From: Octopus sinensis
Taxonomy: Eukaryota
Length of the DNA stretch: 64,000 nucleotides
NCBI RefSeq assembly: GCF_006345805.1
Contig: NC_043005.1
Span: forward strand, 34,038,001-34,102,000
Reading direction: 5' to 3'
Shown: piece by piece, positions 4,987 to 50,600 of the stretch
Layout of the letters: each line of letters begins with the position of its first letter
Numbering within the stretch: the stretch's first letter is position 1
The notes under the pieces: generated by a model
What the model saw: only the letters and a program-made list of their open reading frames with translations
The model's database searches: none
Told to the model about the DNA's origin: nothing
Translations under genes and position numbers: made by a program

Positions 4987-5168
4987 TACAAAATTAGAGA
5001 ATGGAGAAACATACTTAAATCAATAAAACATCAACTATCAGATGATACCCAATCAATACTTTAATACACCATTACATATCAGCAAAGGCATTATACAAAA
5101 TATACAGTAAGAGTAAATAGACAAAGAGATATAAGTATAAAATTTCAAATATATGTAATTAAATCAAA

Positions 5169-7784: not shown

Positions 7785-7909
7785 GTAAATGTGCTGTTCT
7801 TTGCCAAAAGCCGTGAATTAGTTGGAGAAAATAGAAGTGAAATCAGTATCACATCGAGATCTGTCACTACTGACCAACTAACTTCCTTTTTATTGGAGAC
7901 TTTTCCAAG
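7785..7909 (+). CDS. MOCS2A: Molybdopterin synthase sulfur-carrier subunit (MoaD), internal coding exon: VNVLFFAKSRELVGENRSEISITSRSVTTDQLTSFLLETFP(S)
   Basis: Polypyrimidine tract + ttccag acceptor, aag|gtaaag donor, phase 0/2; matches the V.VLYFAKS.E..G motif of MOCS2A exon 2. Confidence 0.93.
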
Positions 7910-9632
7910 GTAAAGTGAACAAGTGAGGTACTTAACTACAATATCAAATGTCACTTTTACTTTCTCATAATCAACGTTAATTTGTCATTCTGTCTTGTTA
8001 CTTTAGAATGGATTGGTAACTTAAGTTCATATTGAAGAAGTTACAGTTCATAACTGTCACATGCAGTGCTATACTTTATTTCAAACTAAAACACAGTTCG
8101 CAACATCTCAGTTCATCTAGCTGAAAATGAGTATCATGAAAGATACAGTTCATTGCTGCACACTAGATTCTAGTTGTCTCTCATCTTTTGGATTACTTCA
8201 CAAAAACTAACTAGCCTTTTCAGTGTCAGAAAATACTTCAGTAACGAATGGTAACCCTATACAAAGTTCAGATGAGATCGACAATGAAGGACTTTTCTCA
8301 CTTTTTGGACAGTGCTGCTACTTTACATTCAGCCATCCTAGAACTTCATCCACAATAAGCCTACCCTCTGGTTTTAACTTATATAAAGTTATCCACCATC
8401 ACAATCCATCCTCTGGATCATAAACCTGCTGTATCATCTTTCTCTCTCTCTCTTTTCTGCCACTATTACATTGGTTACTGCTCCTCAGACAGCTCATGTT
8501 GATTAGTCTCATTCCATATGGTCACAACAGGTGAGGATGAATTTCACAGAGATGGGGACTGACTGGGACACTGCTTGGAGGGTTGCCTAGGATGATCCAA
8601 GCAAATGCCAACAGCGCATGCCTCCATACCTGACCTGACCTCCTCTTCCTCCTCTGTCTCTATGATTGTTTTTCTCTCACTGTATGTCACATTCCTTAAC
8701 TCATTGCCTGCCACCAAGCTTAGTTGTGTACGCATTGTACCTCTCTTATTTTAATTTTCTCTCTGTATCTCTTACTCTTTCTCTCCACCTACCTTTATAT
8801 GACTGGAGGGACCAACCAACTGACATTTACATCAGCTACTATTGTAGAGATAGCACAAGGGATAAAACATGAAATAAATAAATATACGAATGAGATAAAA
8901 TAATTTTTTTTTTTATAATCAAGAGAGAAAACAGTGCCCATGACCCTTTATAAGGCCTCAGAGATCAATGGGAGGGAGAGAGTATCCTCAGAAACCTGGT
9001 CCAAATGCTTACAATAGGGTGAACTCTACTGAGATAATTTAAGGTCTCAGGTGGTGATGTTGTCAAGCTGGGAAACTGTTTAAATCTATCACCTTAGTAA
9101 GTTATGGTGGGATTTGAACTCAGAATGCAAAGAGCTAGAATAACTACTACAAAGCATTTGGCCCAATATTCTTACAGCCTGCCAATCCATTTTTAACATG
9201 TGGTATGTATGCCCTGGTGGCTAGTTTCTGTAATGGAGATAATCACTTTTTTTTTGTTTTTCTCTTATGAAGATCTTAAGATTTCTTCTTATGAGTACTC
9301 CTGCATAACACTATTTCATTCTTATTAAAAATCATCAGCATGACATAGCAAATTAAATAAATTAAACATTTTACAAAGCAAGGCATGACTTATAGATGGA
9401 AAATAATTGCAGTTTTATCAAGGATGAAAAGGCAAAGTTGAACTGGTAGGATTTGAACTCTGGGTACAGTGAATCATTTCTGCAAGGCTTTGTAGCTAAC
9501 ACTTTAATAACTGTCAATTTGCCACCATACTGAGAAATACCGATAAATATGATTACGCAGCTATTTAAAATCTACTTCAAAACTAGTTTACTACCATTAA
9601 AGTGTTGATATTGTTTATTTCTTCTTTTCTAG

Positions 9633-9756
9633 TTTAAAGCCTCTGAAACAGTCCATGATAATTGCTTTGAATGAGGAATATTTGTCTGAAGATGAAACCA
9701 TATGTTTATCAAATGGAGATGAAATTGCAATAATTCCTCCAATCAGTGGTGGATAA
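9633..9756 (+). CDS. MOCS2A: MOCS2A last coding exon: (S)LKPLKQSMIIALNEEYLSEDETICLSNGDEIAIIPPISGG*; exon continues 4 nt to the donor at 9761
   Basis: ttttctag acceptor, phase 2 fits the previous exon; diagnostic GDEIA.IPPISGG di-glycine C-terminus; TAA 9754-9756; tcca|gtgagt donor. Confidence 0.96.
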
Positions 9757-9838
9757 TCCAGTGAGTACCTTAATCTATTGGATAATCCTATGAGTAGTTT
9801 AACATGTTTGATAATCCAATGAGTAATTTAATATATTC
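9752..9838 (+). repeat. 3 x 29-bp tandem repeat spanning the MOCS2A stop codon and 5' splice site
   Basis: gataatccagtgagtaccttaatctattg / gataatcctatgagtagtttaacatgttt / gataatccaatgagtaatttaatatattc. Confidence 0.85.
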
Positions 9839-10789
9839 AGTATTTGAGACACCCTTTAACACTTTGCCTGTCCAAAGCATTTGTCCTAAAAGTCCATACT
9901 TGTTTTCAGATTTTTAGTTAGTCCTCGTTTCATATGTTCTGGGTAATATAAAACTTTCCTATCATAAAAAACAAGTTGATCAGGTGGTTTAAAAAACTGG
10001 AAATTTATAATCATGTATGATGCATGGATGTCAGAGAAATATGCCCTGTGTATCACAGGTGATACACAAGATGGGCAAAGGGTTAAAAAGAAGTTTGTTT
10101 TTTTCATAAAACAATTGTTTTTGTTTTAATCAAATTTTTATCAATATCATCATCATCATCATCCAAATGATTTCGACATCAATTCCCATTATGTAAAACC
10201 CATGTTCTGTGTCATCACTCTAAATTAGTTATATGTCTTACCATTAAAAGTCCTAGCTCCATCTCAATCATTCCTTTCTTCACTTCTAAAATGTGAATTG
10301 ACTTGTCACTTCTCTACAACAAGTAGACCTGTTCTGCTCAGGTTCCTTCCCTTAATTCTTCACCTCATAGTATAAAACATCCCCCTCAATGTCCATAGTC
10401 ATGCAAACATCACTGGTGCCAGTGTTATGAAAAAAGCAGCCAGTATGTTGTAAAGCGGTTGGAATTAGGAAGTGTATCCAGCGATAGAAACCATACCCAA
10501 ATAGATAATTGAGCATGATACAGTTTTTGTACTCATTGGATCCTGTCAAACCACCAATTGCAAACCAGCATGGAATATGGACATTAAATGATGATGATAT
10601 CTCCTAAAAGAACAAGATCATTGCATTAACCAGTATCATAAGTCTGGTACTTATTTTATTAATCTCTTTTGCTGAACTTCTAAGTTACAGAGATGTTAAC
10701 ACAACAACACCAGTTGTCGAGCAGTAGTGGGAAACAAACCCAGACACAATGACCCCTCCCCCACTATATGTATATATGATGGACTCTCC

Positions 10790-11068
10790 CATTGAAGACA
10801 ATGTATGAGCATTCAGTTTCTGCTGAATGACATGCACAAATGATATGTTTATAGTGATCAAATGTTTGTGCTGCACATTAGCTCACTCTCACTATCAAAT
10901 CAATGTTGTCTGAACAGATGCACTGTGTGCCGCACATCAGGTGCAAAGTGATTGCAGAGCAATGCAAGATGAAGTGTTTTGGTCAAGAACACAATGCACC
11001 ACCCGGTCTAGGAATTGAACTCACGATCGCTAGATTGTGAGTGCAACACCCTAACAGCTAAGCCATAC
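10790..11068 (-). mobile_element. tRNA-derived CORE-like SINE (related copy at ~45480-45722, minus)
   Basis: Minus head tggcttagctgttagggtgttgcactc..gagttcaattcc (A/B-box-like) followed by ttcttgaccaaaacacttcatc CORE-like segment. Confidence 0.6.
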
Positions 11069-12268
11069 GAAATACTTCTTTCAGTTTCTGTGTATTGAAT
11101 CCATTCACAAGGCTTTGGTCGGCCTGGGGCTATAGTTGGAGACACTTGCCAAGGTGCTACACTGTGTGTCTGAACTTGAAACCATGTAGTTGAGAAGCAA
11201 ACTTCTTACCACACTGCCATACCTGCACCTATAAGTTTCAATAAAACAAAGAGTACCCTTATGTTGATGGAGCCTGTTGTAACTAATGGAAATATTTTGA
11301 CATCTTGAATGAATTTTGTCTGTCACAAGCTGCTCAAGAGAAGCAGAATTTCAGAATGCAAATCTGACACTGAGAAACAGTTCATTGATGGTCTTGTCTT
11401 GTCCAGCAATGAAGGCATAGCTAGATTGTGTACTGCCTTGGGTAGTCCTTGGATATGCTATGCCCTCCAACTCTTGTCCTGCCCCCTATACAGTCTTATA
11501 CAACAGACCCCGAAATACTATCCCCATAAAAGTGTTACCTGGGGCAGAACCCCAACCTCACTAGCTATGTTTCTGCAGAAATCTGTTAATAAATGTTTTA
11601 AAAGGTGTTGGTTGTTTAGTTGTTTAGTTCCAGATCAGTTCTGTTGGTATATTTAAGACTACACTGTCAAATGTGTCTTTTCTCTTTTTAAAGTGGTAGG
11701 CTGTTATAGGAAGGGAATTTGGCTTTTACTTCTAGTAGATCACACTACTACATAGAGACTCACTTGATGATTTCATCATCATCATTTTAATGTCCACTTC
11801 TCCATGCTTGCATGGGTTGGATGGAGTAGATTGAGGCATTTTTTCTCTAGTTGTATGTCCTTTCTGTCACCAGCCCTCACCTGTTTCTGAGTTAGGTAAT
11901 ATTGCCCTTCGTCAAACATGTTCTTGCAGAATATCAGAAATGAATGATGTGTGTGTTTGACAGTGAAACTCATTTACAACTATCATGTGATGTCAACACA
12001 AAGAGATATAACCATACACATTCTCTCTCCCCCCTCTCTCTCTCACACACACACATACACTTCTAAATAGATATATACAACAGGCTTCTTTCAGTTTCTG
12101 TTAAAAGATCGTAAAACTTTGATGTAGTTTCAGAAAAGGAAGATGACCAGAAATCTTTAAACTGATTGCATAGACAAAATAAATGATGATTATTTAAACA
12201 TTTTGATAGGTTTTATTTTTTGTTAACTTTATCTGGTTTTTGTTATATTTTCTTTATTAGTTTCTGCA

Positions 12269-12368
12269 ATGACTGACATCGTGGAATTATCTAATGAGAA
12301 ATTGAATGTTGAGGACGTTTCAAAATCTGTCACTTTACCAAATTGTGGTGCTGTATCACTATTTATTG
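12269..12368 (+). CDS. MOCS2B: Molybdopterin synthase catalytic subunit (MoaE), first coding exon: MTDIVELSNEKLNVEDVSKSVTLPNCGAVSLFI(G); exon starts at 12261
   Basis: tttattag acceptor at 12259-12260, ATG 12269, attg|gtaaga donor; matches EKL.V.EVS..V..P.CGA.SLF.G of MOCS2B. Confidence 0.93.
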
Positions 12369-19634: not shown

Positions 19635-19785
19635 GTACCACTCGTGATCATTTTGATGGCAAAGAGGTGTTAAGCTTGCAGTATGAAGCATACCATACAA
19701 TGGCTAAAAAGAAAATGTTTGAAATTTGTCAAGATATACGCAACAAATGGAATGTTGGAAAAATCGCTCTTGTACATAGATTAGG
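19635..19785 (+). CDS. MOCS2B: MOCS2B exon: (G)[49 protein letters not shown](G)
   Basis: tttcag acceptor, ttagg|gtaagc donor, phases 1/2 consistent; GTTR..F.GK.V..L.YEAY and HRLG motifs. Confidence 0.97.
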
Positions 19786-19869
19786 GTAAGCATGATTTTC
19801 CTGATTATTTAAAGTTTGTTTTTCTGGGTTTTGTAAGTTGTCAGAATCTGTGATAGAATACTTAAGCTT

Positions 19870-21400
19870 AGACTAGTGCTGCAATATGGTTTAGCAACAA
19901 TTATCTCAGTTTATGCCCCTCAGCCAAGGCTACATGATGAACAGAAAGATCATTTTTATGACACCTTCTTGCAGACTACCTCATCAACAAATAACAGGGA
20001 CTTTCTCTTTGTGGCTGGTGACAACATCCAGCAAACTTCCATGGTGTACGGATTTGGCTCCTGTAATGAGGAGGGAGCCAGGCTGCTGGAGTTCTGTGAT
20101 GCAAATGATCTTATGATCTGTAATGTTAACTTCAAGAAACCTGCCAGTCACCTGTTCACCTACCAATCTGGTGGACACACTAGCCAGGAAGCGGGAACAT
20201 AGGTTAGAAGTTAGAAGCAAGGATCAGTCTTCAGCCTCCTCTTATTCATCATAGTCTTCCAGGCAATAACAGAGGAATTCTAAACAGGCTACACCTAGGA
20301 ACTCCTTTATGCTAATGACCTTGTTCTAATAACTGAGTCACTACCAGATCTAGAGAAGTTTCAAGTGTGGAAGCAAGGTCTAGAATGAAAGGGTCTTAGA
20401 GTCAATCTAGCAAAAACCTAAGTCTTAGTAAGTAGGAAGGCAGACAAACCATAAATCACTTCAGGTAGTTGGCCCAGCTCGATCTGTAGGAAAGGTGTAG
20501 ATAGAAACGCCATAAGATGTACCTGGTGTAAGCTATGGATACATAAGAGGTGCAGCAATATCAAGGAATGGTTAACTGGGAAGATAATTTTTGTGTGTGG
20601 CAGATGCACAGGGGCAATAAACACTGAAACTCTGCAGAGAGCAGCTTCCATCACATGCCAAGAGGAAAAACGAGAAGTAGTTGATAGCTTCCGTTATCTA
20701 GGTGACCAAGTCAGCAGTGGAGGTGGATGCTCTGAGAGTGTAGCTACTAGAATAAAAATAGCCTAGGCAAAGTTCAGATAGGTCTTATCTCTGCTGGTAA
20801 CAAAGGGCCTCTCGCTCAGAGTGAAAGGTAGATTGTATGATGCATGTGTGTGAACAGCCATGCTACATGGTAGTGAAACATTGGCTGTGACTGCTGAGGA
20901 CATGTGTAGGCTTGAAAGAAATGAAGTTAGTATGCTCTGCTGGATGTGTAATGTCAGTGTGCATACATGGCAGAGTGTAAGTGCCCTGAGAGAAAAGTTG
21001 GACACAAGAAGTATCAGGTGTGGTGTACAAGAAAGACAACTGCACTGGTATGGTCATGTTACATATAGATGAGGACAGCTGTGTAAAGAAGTGCTGATCT
21101 CTACCTGTGGAAGAGGTAGACCCAGGAAGACCTGGGATGAGATGGTGCAGCACAACCTTTGAACGTTGGGCCTCACTGAAGCAATGACAAACAACCGAGA
21201 CCTTTGGAAATATACTGTTTGAGAAGACCTGGCAAGCTAAGTGAGTTCGTAGCTATGGCATATGCCAGTGTTGCATAACTGGCCCATTTAAGAGTTCCCT
21301 TCAATCGTCGGGAAATGTGCTGTGCTTGAGAAGACCTATTGAGTCAAGTAAAATTGCTGTCATGGCTGATGCCAGTACTACCTGACCGGCACCCCTGCTG
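19870..21400 (+). mobile_element. RTE LINE copy F (AP endonuclease remnant joined by internal deletion at ~20205 to the 3' half of RT), in MOCS2 intron 19786-21953, sense
   Basis: IISVYAPQ..FVAGD..GFGSCNEEGARLLEFC..FTYQSGGH then QGSVFS, MLHGSETLAVTAE, GRPRKTWD. Confidence 0.85.
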
Positions 21401-21953: not shown

Positions 21954-22077
21954 TGAAGTCCCTGTTGCTGAAGCAAGTGTTATTATAGCCATCTCTTCAG
22001 AACACCGCAAGGAATCTCTTGAAGCAGTTCAATATGCCATTAATACACTGAAGGCTGTAGTGCCTATTTGGAAAAAG
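21954..22077 (+). CDS. MOCS2B: MOCS2B exon: [41 protein letters not shown]
   Basis: ttgcag acceptor, aag|gtaaca donor; conserved MoaE HR and LK...PIWKKE motifs. Confidence 0.97.
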
Positions 22078-24949: not shown

Positions 24950-25039
24950 GAACTTTATCGGAACAGTTCACCTGAGTGGAAAGAAAATACAGAATACTTT
25001 TGGAAGAAGGAAGGATGTTGCAATTTCAAAATGCTCTAA
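24950..25039 (+). CDS. MOCS2B: MOCS2B terminal exon: ELYRNSSPEWKENTEYFWKKEGCCNFKML*
   Basis: ttttttccag acceptor, phase 0; E.Y.....WKEN.E motif; TAA 25037-25039; total MOCS2B 154 aa. Confidence 0.93.
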   Translation, partial: ELYRNSSPEWKENTEYFWKKEGCCNFKML

Positions 25040-29154: not shown

Positions 29155-31386
29155 TGCTGAATGTTGACCAACAGAGGGACCAGCTATCCGAGTTGACAGT
29201 TCCTTGGTAGTTAAGGCAATTAGAAGCATGAAGACAGGGAAAGCCCCAGGCCCATCAGGAATCACTGCAGAGATGCTCAAAATATCTGGTAGTGTCAGCT
29301 ATAGCCTAGTCACCCGTATAGTTAATCAGGTGTTACACGAAGGAGTCATACCCAATGACTGGTGTAGCAGTATACTAGTCAACTGCTACAAAGGTAAAGG
29401 TGACGCCCTAGATACAAATAATTACAGAGGTATCGAGCTGTTGGATCAGGTAATGAAGGTTACGGAGAGGGTCATAGCCCAACTAATTAGAGAGAGAGAG
29501 TTAGTTTAGATGAGATGCAGTTTGGGTTTGTGCCAGGGAAAAGTACCACTGATGCTATATTCCTGGTAAGACAGCTGCAGGAGAAATACCTAGCCAAAGA
29601 TAAGCCCCTGTACCTGACTTTTGTTGACATGGAGAAAGTCTTCAACAGGGTCCCCAGATCCCTTATCTGGTAGTCAATGAGGAAACTAGGGATAGATGAA
29701 TGGTTAGTGAGAGCTGTGCGAGCCATGTACAGGGACGCTGCTAGTAAGGTGAGGGTTGGCAACGAGTACAGTGAAGAATTCCGAGTAGAGGTAGGGGTCC
29801 ACCAAGGCTCAGTCTTCAGCGCCCTCCTATTTATCATAGTCCTCCAGGCAATAACGGAGGAATTCAAGACAGTATACCCCTGGGAGCTCCTCTATGCTGA
29901 TGACCTTGCTCTAATTGCTGAGTCACTATCAGAACTGGAGGAGAAGTTTCAGGTGTGGAAGCAAGGATTAGAATCGAAGGGCTTTAGAGTCAATCTAGCT
30001 AAAATCAAAGTCCTAATAAGTAGGAAGGTAGACAAATCACAAACACCTTCAGGTAGATGGCCCTGCTCGATCTGTAGAAAAAGTGTAGGTAGAAACTCTA
30101 TAAGATGCACCAAGTGTAAGCTATGGACACATAAGAGGTGCAGCAATGTCAAAGGAAGGCTAACTAGGAAGATAGTTTTTGTATGTGGCAGATGCTCAGG
30201 AGCAATAAACACTGAAAATGCTCTGAGACCAACTTCTGCCACTTTCCAGGGAGAAAAACTAGAAATAGTTGATAGCTTCCGTTACCTAGGTGACCAAGTC
30301 AGTAGCGGGGGCGGGTGTGCTGAAAGTGTAACTGCTAGAGTAAGAATAGCTTGGGCAAAGTTCAGAGAGCTCTTACCTCTGCTGGTGACAAAAGATCTCT
30401 CGCTCAGAGTAAAAGGCAGACGGTATGATGCGTGTGTACGAACAGCCATGCTACATGGCAGTGAAACATGGGCCGTGACTGCTGAGGATATGCATAAGCT
30501 CGCAAGAAATGAAGCCAGTATGCTCCACTGGATGTGTAATATCAGTGTTCATACTTGACAGAGTGTAAGTACCTTGAGAGAAAAGCTGGACCTAAGAAGC
30601 ATCAGATGTGGTGTGCAAGAGAGACGACTGCGCTGGTATGGTCATGTGGCGAGAATGGATGAAGATAGTTGTGTGAAAAAGTGCCACACCCTAGCGGTTG
30701 AGGGAACCTGTGGAAGCGGCAGACCCAGGAAAACCTGGAATGAGGTGGTGAAGCACGACCTTCGAACTTTAGGTCTCACTGAGGAAATGACTAGAGACCG
30801 AGACCTCTGGAAGTATGCTGTGCGTGAGAAGACCCGGCAGGACAAGTGAGACCATAACCCATGGCCTTCTACACGGGATGTAGCCAGTCCACTTATGCAT
30901 ACCTTCCCTTCTTGGGACACAAAACTCTACTTGTGAAGACCTGTTGAGGCAAGTGAGAATCAGAATCGAAATCGATCAATGGAAATTGCCGCTGAGATAC
31001 CAGTGCCGGTGGCGCATAAGAGAACCATCCGACCGTGGCCATTGCCAGCGCCGCCCCGACTGGCCTCGTATCGGTGGCACGTAAAAAGCACCATTCGTTC
31101 GTGGCCGTTGATAGCCTCGCCTGGCCCCCGTGCCGGTGGCACATAAAAAGCACCATACGATCGTGGCCGTTTGCCAGACTCGTCTGGCACCTGTGCCGGT
31201 GGCACGTAAAAAGCACCCACTACACTCATGGAGTGGTTGGCGTTAGGAAGGGCATCCAGCTGTAGAAACATTGCCAGATCAGACTGGGCCTGGTGTAGCC
31301 TTCTGGCTTCCCAGACCCCAGTTGAACTGTCCAACCCATGCTAGCATGGAAAGCGGACGCTAAACGATGATGATGATGATGATGAT
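29155..31386 (+). mobile_element. RTE LINE copy B (young, 5'-truncated)
   Basis: 293-aa ORF 29677-30558 with QGS, YADD, PHD finger, FRYLG; 3' UTR tandem repeats; (GAT)n tail. Confidence 0.93.
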
Positions 31387-37924: not shown

Positions 37925-39210
37925 CAGGGGTTGGACAAAATAATGGAAACACCTAGCATCATAGCATCGTAATTTTGAAATATCTATAAAACCGTCAAAA
38001 GCTTGTTTATTTTTATGTTTTTTGATTTATTATTAGTGTTGTTGAATATGTTTTGCTAAAATTGCAGCTACTTTTCAGATATTACAAGAAAAAGAAATTA
38101 AAATTAATTAAAATGACAGATCTCTCAGACTTTCAAAGAGGTCAAATTGTTGGTGCTCATATGGTGGGCACTAGTGTAATGAAAACAGCCGGAATATTTG
38201 GGGTATCAAGAAGTAGTCTCAAAAGTAATGACAGCTTGGAAACACCTTAAAATTTCAAACAAATTTATTTTAATATGAGGTAGGACAGACATAGGCAGTA
38301 ATTACAGCTTGAATTGTACGAAGTATGGTCTTGCACAAAGTTTGAATTGTTTCCAAAGGAATTTTTGTCCATTCTTCAGCTAAAACAGTCTCCAGTTCTT
38401 GTAGTGATGATGGTGGAGGATATTGACTCCTTACTTCTTTTCCCAAAATGCACCATAAATGTTCAATAATATTGAGATCTGGGGACTGTGGTGGCCAGAT
38501 AAGATGTTCAACTTCACTAGAATGTTCTTTATGCCATTCAGTAACAACTTTAGCTGTGTGAATTGGTGCATTATCATCCTGAGAGATTGCGTTTCCCTCC
38601 GGAAACAGCTCCACAACCATAGGATGAATTTGATCAGATAAAATGCTTAAATAGTCTTGACTATTAATTCTGCCATGAAAGGAAACTATTGGGCTGGCAG
38701 ATTTACAAGATATAGCCCCCTCCCCCCAGATCATCACAGATCCTCCTCTATGTTTAACAGTTAGAAGAAGGTAGTCTGGGTCAAATGCTTCTTTTAGCTG
38801 TCTCCACATGTATACTCAGGCAGTGGTCAGAAATAAGGTAAAGGATGACTCGTCCGAAAAAATGACATTCTTCCACTGCTCTAGGGATCGATTCTGTAGG
38901 TTTTTACTCCACTCTAAATGCTTTGCAATGTTTGTTTTTGAAAGTAGTGGTTTTCTGATTGCAGCCCTCCTGTGAAATCAGGCTTTGTGCAGCTCCTGGC
39001 GAACAGTTTTTGTGGAAACTGGGTTCTCGAGGTGGTCATTATGCTCTGCAGTAATTTTGGGAGCTGTACTTTTGTGATTCTTTCTAACAATTTGTGTAAG
39101 AGTCCAATGGTCCCTATCTGAAAGTTTTGGTTTTCTTCCAGAGTTTTGTTTCGATGGGGAGTTTTTTCCTCGTTCTCAAAGCTGTCATTACTTTTGAGAC
39201 AGTACTTCTT
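37925..39210. mobile_element. Tc1-family DNA transposon with internal inversion
   Basis: TA + CAGGGGTTGGACAAAATAATGGAAACAC TIR; N-terminal HTH MTDLSDFQRGQIVGA on plus; remainder incl. IFSDES, QDDNAPIH, WPPQSPDLNIIEHLW on minus (38238-39210). Confidence 0.9.
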
Positions 39211-47699: not shown

Positions 47700-50600
47700 T
47701 ACTCCCTAGCTCTACAAACTTAGAGCTGCTACAATCATCATTAACACAATGAAAGGTAGGCCTTGCAAGGTTGTTGAAATCCTTGAGCAGAGGTATGTAG
47801 ATGTGTACTGGATGCAAGAAATACAATGGAGAGGAGCCTCAGCTAGGTTGCTTGTGGGCAAAGAACACAGATACAAAATCTGTGTGGGCTGCAGTGATGG
47901 ATAGGTTGTGTAGGTATTCTTCTAGCAGATAAATTAGTCAATAAGGTGACTGAAGTAGTCAGAGTGTGTAATAAGATTATTAAGCTAAGAATAGGCTTGT
48001 TTAATGTAATAGTGACATCTTCGCATATGCTCCACATGTCAGACTGGCAGTTGTTCAGAAGGATCATTTCTATGAATCCCTTCTGTAAACTAACTCAATA
48101 ACAAAAGGTGACTTCAATGGTCATGTTGGGAAGCACTTTGATGGATTTCAGGGCGTTCATGGAGATTACAGCTTTGGTTCTAGAAATGAAGAGGGAACAA
48201 AGCTGCTGGAGTTTTGTGATGTAAATGACTTGCTGGTCTGCAATGCTATCTCCAGGAAACCTGGCAGTCAACTGATCACTTATCAATCTGGAGAGCACAC
48301 AAGCCAGATTGATTACATTCTCACCAGAAACTAGGACAGGCTGCTGCTCATAAACGTAGTCTTACCTTGGTGGAGAATGTGCACCACAACATAGTTTAAT
48401 GGTTAGAGATTTTGGACATAGGGCTAGAAGGACCAGAGATGCAAACCAATATGGAAAAGGAGGTCATGGAAGGTCAAGGATCCTTCAAATGGGCAGAGGT
48501 TTAGAGATGTTCTAAATGAAACATTTAATGAGAAGGAAGAAGAGACATATGACATAAAGGATACCTGTAAATTCTTACAGGATAATCTACCAAGGGTGAC
48601 AGACCAACTTTGTGGTTGGAGCAAAGCTTCTGCCAGATCAAGGGTGATATGGTAGTCTAACAATGAGGTTGACAGAAACATAAAAGTGAAGAAACAGGTT
48701 TGGAAAGAGTAGAAAAGTTGGGGTAGGAAAGAACCATGTCAGAAACTAAAAGAGAAGCAAGGTAATGGGTTTATCTAGCAAGGGTAGAACAAAAAGGAAG
48801 AGGTTTGCTAAAGTCTTACAGCATGAAGATCAGTGACTTAAGGTGTTCTGTATTGATAAACAGTGTCAAAGAGAATCAAGATATTGTGGGAAAGAAGTGT
48901 GTAGGAATGGATAATGGTATGCTTGCACTTAGTGATTCTAAAATGAAAGAGGTGTGGAATAGCTACTATGAAAGTTTATTAAATGTGGAGAATAAATGGG
49001 AGAAAAGGAGTCTTTCCCTTGTGAATTCAACAGAGGGACTAGCTATCCTAATTGATAACAGTATGGTAGATAAGGCAATTAACGATAACAATACATGGGA
49101 AGCCTCTAGTCCATCAGTAGTTACCATGGAGATGTATAAAATATCTGGTAGAGTAGGATACTGTCTAGTCACCCATATTGTTTATCAGGTTATTCAGGAA
49201 GATGTAAGCCCCAATGACTTGTGTAGCAGCATTATAATCAGCTGTTACAAGGGTATTGGAGATTCCTTAGATAAAAGTAATTATAGAAACATCAAATTGC
49301 TGGAACAGGTGATGAAAGTTATGGAGAGAGTTGTAACCCAATTGATTAGGAACACAATTAAGCTAGATGAAATGTTGTTTGGCTTTGTGCCAGGGAGATG
49401 CACTACTGGTGCTATTTTCATAGTCAAGCAACAACAAGAAAAGTATGTAGCTAAGAATAAACTGTTATACTTGGTATTTGTTGATCTGGAGAAAGCCTTT
49501 GATGGGGTAACTTGCTCTGTGATATGGTGGTCTCAGAGGAAGCTGGAGATAGAAGAATGGCTTGTGAAAGTGGTACAAGCCATATACAGGAGTACTGTTA
49601 GTAAGGTAAGAGTTAGCCAAGAGTACAGTGATGAATTTAGTGTATAGGTGTTCATCAAGGCATGGTTCTCAGCACCCTCCTATTCACCATTATCTTTCAG
49701 ACCATAACAGAGGAGTTTAAGACTGGATGCCCATGTAAATTACTAAATGCTGATGATTTTACTCTCATAGCAGAATCTGTAACAGAATTAGTAAATTAGT
49801 AAAGACATTCCAGGTGTGAAGCAAAACCTTAAATCAAAGTGTCTTAAAGTTAACTTAGCAAAGACCAAGTTCCTAGTAAGCAAGGACACTATCAGGACCC
49901 TATCTATCTTAAGGAAAATGGCCCTGCTTGATATGTAGGAAAGGTGTAGGTAAGAACTCCATTTGGTGTACCCAGTGGAAGTTATGGATACACAAGAGGT
50001 GCAGTGAAATAGTTGGAAGGTTAGCAGAGAAAGTAGTGTTCATGTGTGGAAGATACACAGAAGTCACAAAGTTTACTGATACACGGAAAACTAATTTTCT
50101 TGTATGACCCATAGGCTCTTTAGAGATTGGGGATGATTTCTGTGGCCTAGGTAACCTAATTAGCTGTGGAGGACGATAGGGTTTCCAAAAGTATAATTGC
50201 TAGAATAAAAATGGGATGGAAAAATTTTAAAGAGCTTTTACCCCTGTTGGTATTCAAAAGTCTCTCACTTCAAGAAAAAGGAAGTTTGTTTGAAGTTTGT
50301 GTACAAACTGCAATGCTAGATGGTAGTGAGATATGGGCTCTAAATGCAGAAGACATGTAGAAACAAAGAAGGAATGAAGCTAGTATGCCCCATTGGATGT
50401 GCAATGTCAATGTACACGAAAGACTGTGTGTTTGTGTATTGAGAGAAAAGTTAGGCATAAGAGGAATTAGCTGTAGTGTGAAGGAGGAAAGATTGTGTTG
50501 GTTCGATCATGTGATGCATATGGACCAGGACAGTTGCATAAAGATCTGCTGATCACTTAAATTAGATGGAACTTGAGGAAGAGGGACATCCAGGAAGATG

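Follow-up and report, generated by a model that had tools for sequence, protein, structure and literature searches.

The locus described here is the MOCS2 gene of Octopus sinensis, the conserved animal gene for both subunits of molybdopterin synthase. Its two open reading frames (ORFs), MOCS2A and MOCS2B, follow each other without overlap and share a reading frame, with 12 nt between them in the spliced sequence. Although this in-frame gap is genuine, it amounts to a coincidence at the level of the genus, within an arrangement that is already known for animals and is widespread. In the reading that we favor, with a probability of roughly 0.55, this conserved gene would yield two separately made proteins, MOCS2B would come from an independent start codon, and the shared frame would be due to chance.

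The window, i.e., the whole stretch of 64,000 nt that was analyzed (contig NC_043005.1, positions 34,038,001 to 34,102,000), contains most of the gene (Table 1). MOCS2A is the small, MoaD-like subunit with a free C-terminal Gly-Gly and MOCS2B is the large subunit (MoaE), both encoded in what appears to be a single transcription unit. The identity of the two ORFs is established directly. The product of the 95-codon MOCS2A ORF (95 aa) matches the full profile of the Pfam domain ThiS (E = 1.3e-13), and its tail, IIPPISGG followed by TAA (3' frame CCT CCA ATC AGT GGT GGA TAA), is that of a MoaD/ThiS-fold protein with a Gly-Gly end; the MOCS2B product matches the Pfam domain MoaE (E = 2.2e-39). The exon structure of MOCS2B is equally direct: its coding segments (12269-12368, 19635-19785, 21954-22077, and 24950-25039) give letter for letter the O. 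sinensis RefSeq protein XP_029641052.1, named “molybdopterin synthase catalytic subunit” (100% identity). Its start position agrees with that of the orthologues, and the donor after 12368 is TTG/GTAAGA. Each ORF matches this locus alone in the 2.7-Gb genome, with no second copy of either.

Exon 1 of MOCS2A was sought inside the 64-kb window and not found there; a genome search located it 4.9 kb upstream, and its peptide agrees with the Argonauta N-terminus MDNSNNEDLVK. Exon 2 is 95.6% identical to its O. bimaculoides counterpart, and the last MOCS2A exon follows the acceptor TTTTCTAG/TTT at 9632/9633. The 95-aa MOCS2A protein is absent from a collection of 15 billion proteins, and neither O. 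sinensis nor O. bimaculoides has it in its protein set; O. vulgaris has a fused model without Gly-Gly. An exact protein look-up for octopus transcripts found no record.

Table 1. Features of the O. sinensis MOCS2 locus (positions in the window unless stated otherwise)
Feature	Position	Strand	Remarks
MOCS2A exon 1	-4889..-4851 (contig 34033111-34033149), outside the window	+	MDYSFAEKEDLVK, then GTATGT donor
MOCS2A coding exon 2	7785..7909	+	VNVLFFAKSRELVGENRSEISITSRSVTTDQLTSFLLETFP, then first two bases of a Ser codon
Last MOCS2A exon	9633..9760	+	...LKPLKQSMIIALNEEYLSEDETICLSNGDEIAIIPPISGG, stop, then 4 spacer nt (TCCA)
Cryptic GT (AGTG/GTGGAT)	9749..9750	+	In first Gly codon, 12 nt upstream of main donor
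29-nt unit, three tandem copies	9750..9837	+	First copy holds MOCS2A stop and GTGAGT donor
MOCS2A stop TAA	9754..9756	+	Next base T (UAA-U)
Predicted intron within intercistronic spacer	9761..12260	+	2,500 nt; donor GTGAGT, acceptor TTATTAG
First MOCS2B coding exon	12261..12368	+	8 nt spacer TTTCTGCA, ATG at 12269-12271, then MTDIVELSNEKLNVEDVSKSVTLPNCGAVSLFIG
MOCS2B exon 2	19635..19785	+	
MOCS2B exon 3	21954..22077	+	RefSeq isoform X2 skips it, with a frameshift as a result
MOCS2B last coding exon	24950..25039	+	Stop TAA 25037-25039
Putative polyadenylation signal AATAAA	25097-25102	+	Predicted from the sequence

We infer the 9760/12261 junction from the main donor CCA/GTGAGT (exon end at 9760, GT at 9761-9762), from the 50-nt AG-free tract (77% pyrimidine) that precedes the acceptor TTTATTAG/TTT at 12260/12261, and from the identical junction in O. 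bimaculoides. The spliced spacer then consists of 4 nt (TCCA) plus 8 nt (TTTCTGCA). Upon re-reading, the spliced text GGT GGA TAA TCC A/TT TCT GCA ATG ACT GAC, translated as SGG-stop-SISAMTD, agrees with a preliminary description of this locus, and so does the layout given there: tandem, non-overlapping ORFs that share a frame and are separated by 12 nt free of any second stop. That description had also excluded a human-style overlap of the ORFs on the grounds that the +1 frame of the MOCS2A exon is closed. There is indeed a TAA in that frame, at 9731-9733, but the actual reason is a different one: overlap is impossible here because MOCS2B uses the frame of MOCS2A, and this frame is closed by the MOCS2A stop.

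The intron within the spacer is ~90% identical to that of O. bimaculoides but matches Argonauta only in two short segments (76 and 51 nt) that are not colinear. The 29-nt tandem repeat at its 5' end is visible in O. bimaculoides too; copies 2 and 3 have ATGAGT at the donor position. At the local base composition, the probability of an in-frame spacer with four open codons is ~0.25, and the in-frame relation is therefore no more than chance gives, much as the earlier 1-in-3 estimate had it; about a third of the lineages compared are in frame.

The same order of ORFs is found on transcript contigs from 9 other animals, namely, two non-octopod cephalopods, an oyster, a mytilid, an Aplysia-like gastropod, another bivalve, a cyprinid-like fish, a coral, and a wasp. 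On these intron-less contigs, MOCS2A is followed by MOCS2B on one molecule, and the two ORFs do not overlap (9/9). The spacers range from 1 to 132 nt. In the two cephalopods, which are sister to octopods in the tree (support 99/96), one is 70 nt long (+1 frame), and the other, of 132 nt, is in frame but interrupted by stops; the other mollusc spacers comprise 29 nt in the oyster, 17 in the mytilid, 58 in the gastropod, and 6 in the other bivalve, and those outside the molluscs 15 nt in the fish and 1 nt in both the coral and the wasp. Argonauta has a spacer of 40 or 44 nt, out of frame. Altogether, the spacer is in frame in 4 of 11 lineages and open in only 2 of these, Octopus and the fish, so that among the cephalopods compared an open in-frame spacer is confined to the genus Octopus, where O. 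bimaculoides shares it in DNA that is 95% identical. A scan of JGI metagenome contigs for eukaryotic MOCS2 transcripts returned only bacterial-grade MoaE matches (38-41% identity).

These comparisons bear on two points of the preliminary description. It had named the frame in cephalopod and mollusc orthologues as a check, and the frame turns out not to be kept: Argonauta and the two other cephalopods deviate in both the length and the frame of the spacer. Its “vertebrate-type” overlap is really an overlap described for the human gene, since the cyprinid-like fish has a 15-nt in-frame open spacer. Small as it is, this survey suggests that animals commonly have separate ORFs with 1-132 nt between them, the overlap in the human gene being the exception. 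Overlapping frames are not a defining trait of the wider family, since none of the nine other species has them. The shared frame and the 12-nt spacer would then be a chance feature of the genus Octopus and not a device for read-through.

The arrangement of both MOCS2 ORFs on one mRNA has been described as highly conserved in animals (PMC2276209, PMC4528330). The octopus ORFs, too, are very likely carried by one bicistronic mRNA, judging by their common strand and order, the splice signals, the single copy in the genome, and the bicistronic contigs of the 9 other animals. Of the stop-start bicistron proposed earlier, the tandem layout thus stands and the single mRNA is very likely, given the transcripts of the relatives and the single copy, but reinitiation is not favored over leaky scanning as the way in which MOCS2B is reached.

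According to the reading that we favor, MOCS2A would be translated from the exon 1 AUG, which lies shortly before the start of the window, to the TAA at 9754-9756; intron 9761-12260 would be removed, and MOCS2B most likely starts independently at the AUG at 12269. As has been shown for the human gene, leaky scanning would carry ribosomes past the MOCS2A AUG, which is poorly placed. In animals, position -3 of the start codon is usually occupied by a purine. In the octopus, the context of the MOCS2A AUG is weak and that of the MOCS2B AUG is strong; with related species counted as independent, position -3 is a pyrimidine in 7/9 species for MOCS2A (T in the octopus) and a purine in 9/9 for MOCS2B. 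Between the two starts the octopus has 7 AUGs, 5 of them with a pyrimidine at -3, while the 2 in a purine context, at +223 and +250, open ORFs of 13 and 4 codons that stop 35 nt before the AUG at 12269. Ribosomes starting at such short out-of-frame ORFs inside MOCS2A could resume scanning and reach the AUG at 12269, because all of these ORFs end upstream of it. An upstream ORF overlapping the MOCS2B AUG is seen in 0/9 species, an absence that is not significant (P about 0.085). Comparison with synonymous shuffles revealed no depletion of out-of-frame AUGs in the MOCS2A ORFs of the nine species (31 observed versus 28.3 expected), which weakens a pure leaky-scanning model. Leaky scanning, by which human MOCS2B is reached (PMC9607355, PMC3923131), is thus not comfortable in the octopus, with seven intervening AUGs and no depletion of out-of-frame AUGs.

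The many intervening AUGs of cephalopods, which make pure leaky scanning inefficient, count in favor of coupled termination-reinitiation, whereby the 40S subunit would stay on the mRNA after the UAA at 9754-9756 and restart at the AUG 12 nt on, tying MOCS2B output to MOCS2A. So do the short spacer in every sampled species (1-132 nt), the 9/9 species in which the MOCS2B AUG is free of overlapping upstream ORFs, and the junctions of the coral (UGA-A-AUG), the wasp (UAA-A-AUG), and a bivalve (UGA-AUG), which resemble classical stop-restart sites. However, a search for UGGGA (motif 1 of the termination upstream ribosome-binding site, TURBS), the sole test made for such a site, found it missing from the last 120 nt of MOCS2A in 8/9 species, the octopus included, and there is no RNA structure around the junction. 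Reinitiation after an ORF of ~90 codons is inefficient without special elements. A weak MOCS2A context combined with a strong MOCS2B context is not required by such a model, and the human gene, with its 77-nt ORF overlap, cannot use reinitiation and uses leaky scanning instead (PMC9607355). With a first ORF of 95 codons, no UGGGA, and AUG contexts that fit leaky scanning, the reinitiation proposed in the preliminary description is possible but unlikely. More doubtful still is the production of MOCS2B mainly from transcripts without a usable MOCS2A start, through an alternative first exon or promoter or through exon skipping. There are precedents, as RefSeq assigns human MOCS2A and MOCS2B to separate transcript variants, NM_176806 and NM_004531 (PMC12289762), and many dicistronic loci also have monocistronic alternatives, according to FlyBase (PMC4528330). 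RefSeq also lists an identical O. sinensis MOCS2B protein under two accessions, together with an exon-skipping isoform, and the locus is therefore alternatively spliced. Yet in both Octopus and Argonauta the MOCS2B AUG lies only 8 nt past a good acceptor, whose pyrimidine tract is free of AG over 50 nt, which argues that the first MOCS2B coding exon is internal; the 2.5-kb intron, compared between Octopus and Argonauta, holds no conserved block resembling an alternative first exon, and every contig of a relative that reaches far enough 5' has both ORFs.

Two further alternatives would join the subunits in a single polypeptide. An in-frame cryptic donor at 9749 had been overlooked in the preliminary description; its use would remove 12 nt, comprising Gly-Gly, the stop, and 4 nt. 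Joining 9748 to 12261 yields ...IIPPIS-VSAMTDIV, an in-frame fusion of MOCS2B to MOCS2A minus Gly-Gly, with the predicted peptide IIPPISVSAMTDIVELSNEK. Because the intron sits within an in-frame spacer, it is conceivable that Octopus switches between donors 12 nt apart, 9761 giving the bicistronic mRNA and MOCS2A, and 9749 giving a monocistronic MOCS2A(ΔGG)-MOCS2B fusion with MOCS2B read from the first AUG, although we regard such a switch as improbable. For a fusion made from some transcripts in this manner, from the MOCS2A AUG and with no internal initiation, speak the GT itself, the in-frame 9748/12261 junction, and the identity of its product to the O. vulgaris gene model CAI9728984.1 (250 aa), from an annotation built on Iso-Seq, RNA-seq, protein, and ab initio evidence (PMC10700109). 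Human MOCS1 also joins MOCS1A and MOCS1B by alternative splicing, its bicistronic form yielding the first protein only (PMC9607355). On the other hand, GTGGAT is without the consensus A at +4 and G at +5, whereas the GTGAGT 12 nt downstream matches GTRAGT fully; the site is not kept in Argonauta, where the homologous GT is in a poor GTTAAC context; the RNA-guided NCBI models of O. sinensis and O. bimaculoides are MOCS2B proteins of 154 and 148 aa, with no 250-aa ORF; and loss of Gly-Gly leaves the MOCS2A domain catalytically dead. In many species, gene predictors commonly produce fused MOCS2 models from which one part or another of MOCS2A is lost, and some mammalian ones need impossible mini-introns. 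All this makes a splice-made fusion hard to credit, and the O. vulgaris model is probably a prediction artifact. Database proteins combining ThiS and MoaE were considered as natural eukaryotic fusions and set aside as artifacts of gene modeling, as most of them delete varying C-terminal parts of MOCS2A or need implausibly small introns.

Read-through of the MOCS2A stop, or its conversion from UAA to UGG by A-to-I editing, would instead give a fusion of MOCS2A, one residue, SISA, and MOCS2B, like the MoaX protein of Mycobacterium tuberculosis, to be cleaved after Gly-Gly; such a product would carry the junction ISGG-X-SISAMTDIVELSNEK. The single in-frame stop is the sole barrier between the ORFs, and coleoid cephalopods edit their mRNA extensively. 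MoaX itself is a natural fusion that works only after cleavage (PMC4326299). Editing would, however, take two adjacent A-to-I changes, and the stop context UAA-U is not a known leaky one. No RNA structure or inverted repeat favoring editing or read-through was found around the MOCS2A stop: folding gave z = +0.85 for the spliced mRNA and z = -0.10 for the pre-mRNA, and no inverted repeat spans the stop. The open in-frame spacer, confined to one genus, is missing from Argonauta and the two other cephalopods, and its frequency across lineages is that of chance. A fusion would also block the free Gly-Gly carboxylate that is essential to MOCS2A, and no protease for a MOCS2A-MOCS2B fusion is known in animals. 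Taken together, these observations speak against the MoaX-like product proposed in the preliminary description, which we consider extremely improbable.

The layout of the locus has consequences for annotation. Octopus pathway reconstructions based on the current protein sets would wrongly miss the sulfur-carrier subunit or include a dead one. With their AUG-rich MOCS2A ORFs, cephalopods also lend themselves to studying the way in which ribosomes get to a second cistron where plain leaky scanning seems inefficient. If a donor switch did operate, MOCS2 would have arrived independently at a splice fusion of the MOCS1 type, and the 250-aa O. vulgaris model would be a real protein.

Among known systems, influenza B virus M1/BM2 (UAAUG) and calicivirus VP2 likewise have a stop and a restart close together on one mRNA, but viral termination-reinitiation requires an upstream TURBS and usually an overlapping stop and start (PMC3035654, PMC2793014), whereas the octopus has no UGGGA and a 12-nt gap. 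MoaX of M. tuberculosis has the same domain order and a Gly-Gly at the boundary. It is encoded by a single uninterrupted ORF, and the product requires cleavage (PMC4326299), in contrast to the octopus gene, which has a TAA at 9754-9756 and a separate start codon and is therefore no fusion gene. Human MOCS1, which serves a neighboring step of the pathway, also has two ORFs per gene, and alternative splicing can remove its first stop, as the cryptic donor at 9749 would do for ORF1 of octopus MOCS2. The MOCS1 splice fusion is experimentally established, with the second ORF of the bicistronic form untranslated (PMC9607355), whereas the octopus MOCS2 fusion is a gene model only.

Human MOCS2 shares with the octopus gene the two proteins, their order in one gene, the Gly-Gly end of MOCS2A, an AUG of its own for MOCS2B, and a poorly placed first AUG, but its last 77 nt of MOCS2A overlap the start of MOCS2B in another frame within one exon (PMC9607355). 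The octopus ORFs, in contrast, are non-overlapping, in the same frame, and 12 nt apart, with a 2.5-kb intron between them. Octopus MOCS2B is also without the N-terminal extension of ~35 residues found in mammalian MOCS2B (mammalian matches have 189 aa). The human protein comprises 188 aa. In the dicistronic Mocs2/CG42503 locus of Drosophila, the small subunit is again encoded by an upstream ORF of the large-subunit mRNA (PMC2276209, PMC4528330); Drosophila Mocs2B has an extra MBIP domain (PMC5817353), from which octopus MOCS2B is free according to Pfam. The MOCS2 transcripts of molluscs, coral, and wasp have the same tandem, non-overlapping layout as the octopus and differ from it only in the length and frame of the spacer.

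The window lies at G000:C9:34038001-34102000, within the Octopus sinensis chromosome sequence, and the DNA quoted in the preliminary description matches it letter for letter on re-reading. The arrangement that had been proposed there, with MOCS2A and MOCS2B (the small and large subunits of molybdopterin synthase) encoded in one frame by non-overlapping ORFs 12 nt apart, was recovered as well: joining 9760 to 12261 reads SGG*SISAMTD, with no second stop. Of the two ORFs, the upstream one matches ThiS/MoaD (E=1.3e-13) and the downstream one MoaE (E=2.2e-39). The acceptor at 12260 is preceded by an AG-free tract of 50 nt (77% pyrimidine), and every junction of the MOCS2B model is GT-AG. MOCS2A has three coding exons specifying 95 aa in total, with a 12.6-kb intron after exon 1, whose peptide agrees with the N-terminus of Argonauta hians MOCS2A, MDNSNNEDLVK.

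Features of the MOCS2 locus and the surrounding window in Octopus sinensis
Feature	Position	Strand	Remarks
MOCS2A exon 1	-4889 to -4851		MDYSFAEKEDLVK/GTATGT; outside the window, 4.9 kb upstream; 5111-5149 of the upstream stretch L012; G000:C9:34033111-34033149
MOCS2A exon 2	7785-7909		
MOCS2A exon 3 (last)	9633-9760		preceded by acceptor TTTTCTAG; codes ...LKPLKQSMIIALNEEYLSEDETICLSNGDEIAIIPPISGG
MOCS2A stop TAA	9754-9756		then TCCA to exon end
Consensus donor GTGAGT	9761		directly after TCCA
Intercistronic intron	9761-12260		2,500 nt; donor GTGAGT, acceptor TTATTAG
First MOCS2B coding exon	from 12261		opens TTTCTGCA-ATG, ATG at 12269
MOCS2B coding segments	12269-12368, 19635-19785, 21954-22077, 24950-25039		
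Transposon fragments	2201-2809, 19837-20202, 29674-30558, 48766-49647	+	
Transposon fragment	38270-38815	-	

Translated, MOCS2B shows 100% identity with the RefSeq entry XP_029641052.1, [quoted passage not shown] The 95-aa MOCS2A had no match in any protein database searched, so both O. sinensis and O. bimaculoides lack an annotation for it. A shorter O. sinensis MOCS2B of 130 aa, RefSeq isoform X2, is exactly what results when the 124-nt exon 21954-22077 is skipped; it is probably non-functional, since skipping changes the reading frame and costs MoaE its conserved C-terminal third. Just 5' of the MOCS2A ATG, L012 5050-5113 contains two CACGTG E-box motifs (CACGTGCT twice, ~27 nt apart) and three small upstream ATGs, one of which opens a 3-codon ORF (ATG AAA CTT TGA) with its stop abutting the MOCS2A ATG; the relevance of these elements would depend on where transcription starts. 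At 9750-9837, a 29-nt unit forms three tandem copies (79% matches), a repeat also present in O. bimaculoides. Both the stop of MOCS2A and the GTGAGT donor fall in copy 1; the intronic copies 2 and 3 have ATGAGT at the donor position and hence provide no donors.

Intron-less transcript contigs with both ORFs were recovered from nine other animals and placed on the MOCS2B tree. The spacer is 70 nt (frame +1) in a non-octopod cephalopod sister to octopods (support 99/96) and 132 nt, in frame with stops inside, in a second member of its clade; it is out of frame in an oyster (29 nt, +2), a mytilid (17 nt, +2), an Aplysia-like gastropod (58 nt, +1), a coral, and a wasp (1 nt, +1, in both). Another bivalve has 6 nt in frame, with the TGA abutting the AUG, and a cyprinid-like fish resembles octopus with 15 nt, in frame and open. 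At the genomic level, the O. bimaculoides junction is identical (95-97% DNA identity), and in Argonauta hians plausible donors lie 32-36 nt past the stop, with the acceptor 8 nt before the ATG, so that the spacer is 40 or 44 nt, both out of frame and with in-frame stops. Overall, an in-frame spacer occurs in 4 of 11 lineages, in 2 of which it is also open; at this base composition, a spacer is expected to be in frame and to stay open over four codons with a probability of 0.25. This distribution is consistent with chance. The open in-frame spacer is not kept outside the genus Octopus and is a genus-level coincidence.

Nothing in these sequences supports the suggestion that read-through or editing of the stop yields a MoaX-like fusion. 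The stop context is UAA followed by U, folding around the stop is no better than that of shuffles in spliced mRNA (z = +0.85) or pre-mRNA (z = -0.10), and a search for an inverted repeat covering the stop found none. The open frame is genus-limited, and MOCS2A requires a free Gly-Gly carboxylate. MoaX itself, the sole natural fusion known, needs cleavage to work (PMC4326299). A fusion of another kind came from an exact-sequence look-up: the O. vulgaris annotation, which merged Iso-Seq, RNA-seq, protein alignments, and ab initio predictions (PMC10700109), includes a 250-aa “molybdopterin synthase catalytic subunit,” CAI9728984.1 (P0197 among the proteins compared), reading ...EIAIIPPIS-VSAMTDIVEL... 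Its junction, 9748/12261, uses a cryptic donor at 9749 (AGTG/GTGGAT), 12 nt 5' of the GTGAGT donor, with the acceptor shared; this deletes Gly-Gly, the stop, and 4 nt, giving a MOCS2A(minus Gly-Gly)-MOCS2B fusion whose frame is preserved solely by the in-frame spacer. Neither this donor nor the fused model figured in the preliminary description. The model is probably an artefact, because GTGGAT is a poor donor beside a perfect one, because NCBI predicts a MOCS2B of 154/148 aa in O. sinensis and O. bimaculoides, and because other annotations often contain fused MOCS2 models, which lack different stretches of MOCS2A and some of which would need impossible mini-introns. A real splice-made fusion through donor 9749 would resemble that of MOCS1, where such fusion really occurs (PMC9607355), but the octopus counterpart, a gene model, seems very improbable. 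Proteins P0061, P0105, P0158-P0163, P0167, P0168, P0176, P0181, and P0182, annotated as “MOCS2B,” are likewise predicted fusions, from fish, insects, crustaceans, molluscs, corals, sponges, and mammals, with differing losses at the MOCS2A C-terminus. Most database fusions look like artefacts that the bicistronic layout induces in gene prediction; closer scrutiny might be worthwhile for the RefSeq “isoform X2” of Montipora and the two Capsaspora fused models.

As to how MOCS2B is reached, human MOCS2 reportedly uses leaky scanning (PMC9607355, PMC3923131). The MOCS2A AUG has a pyrimidine at -3 in 7 of the 9 species with a complete 5' end (T in octopus, CTTTGA-ATG-G), and the MOCS2B AUG has a purine in 9 of 9 (octopus TCTGCA-ATG-A), a combination that reads as a leaky-scanning signature. 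Simple leaky scanning, however, is at odds with the many intervening AUGs (seven in octopus, 6 and 8 in two other cephalopods, 0 in fish, 1 in coral) and with the absent depletion of out-of-frame AUGs in MOCS2A ORFs (31 observed versus 28.3 expected from synonymous shuffles). Among the seven octopus AUGs, -3 is a pyrimidine in five; the ORFs begun at the other two, in purine context, span 13 and 4 codons and end 35 nt 5' of the AUG at 12269. Upstream ORFs overlapping the MOCS2B AUG number 0 in 9 of 9 species (not significant, P about 0.085). The most coherent route, which we favour, would have scanning ribosomes leak past the weak AUGs and, after short ORFs, resume scanning toward 12269. The stop-start bicistron proposed earlier stands in its non-overlapping layout, as in relatives, whereas its termination-reinitiation, following the full 95-codon ORF, is possible rather than favoured: the spacers are short, but no TURBS-like motif was found. 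MOCS2B may also be made from MOCS2B-only transcripts, but no conserved candidate first exon was found in the intercistronic intron. In the 2.7-Gb genome neither ORF has a match anywhere else, so separate monocistronic copies do not exist. Leaky scanning with short-ORF reinitiation is placed ahead of both alternatives.

Transposon debris makes up most of the remaining window, including reverse-transcriptase pieces that carry a PHD-like finger (RVT_1, E 7e-11 to 2e-8), part of an endonuclease-RT lying in a MOCS2B intron, and a piece of a DDE_3 transposase (E=9e-14). The window's opening 400 nt occur at least 30 times genome-wide.

Taken together, the locus appears to be the MOCS2 bicistron, known and conserved, in the non-overlapping layout that is common for it. 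The useful outputs are the corrected MOCS2A annotation and a caution over the fused O. vulgaris model, which conflicts with the NCBI models of O. sinensis and O. bimaculoides. Judging from the animals compared, the tandem layout in octopus is not unusual, and non-overlap seems to be the common state in this sample. The cyprinid-like fish transcript described above, which is teleost-like (contigs L028 and L029; Logan SRR20072260, SRR20072257) and whose MOCS2B is 89% identical to that of a cyprinid, has non-overlapping ORFs, with the 15-nt open in-frame spacer and zero AUGs between the starts, so the overlapping arrangement is not general to vertebrates. Human MOCS2, in which the ORFs overlap by 77 nt (PMC9607355), is the exception within this sample, in contrast to the non-overlapping ORFs of octopus.
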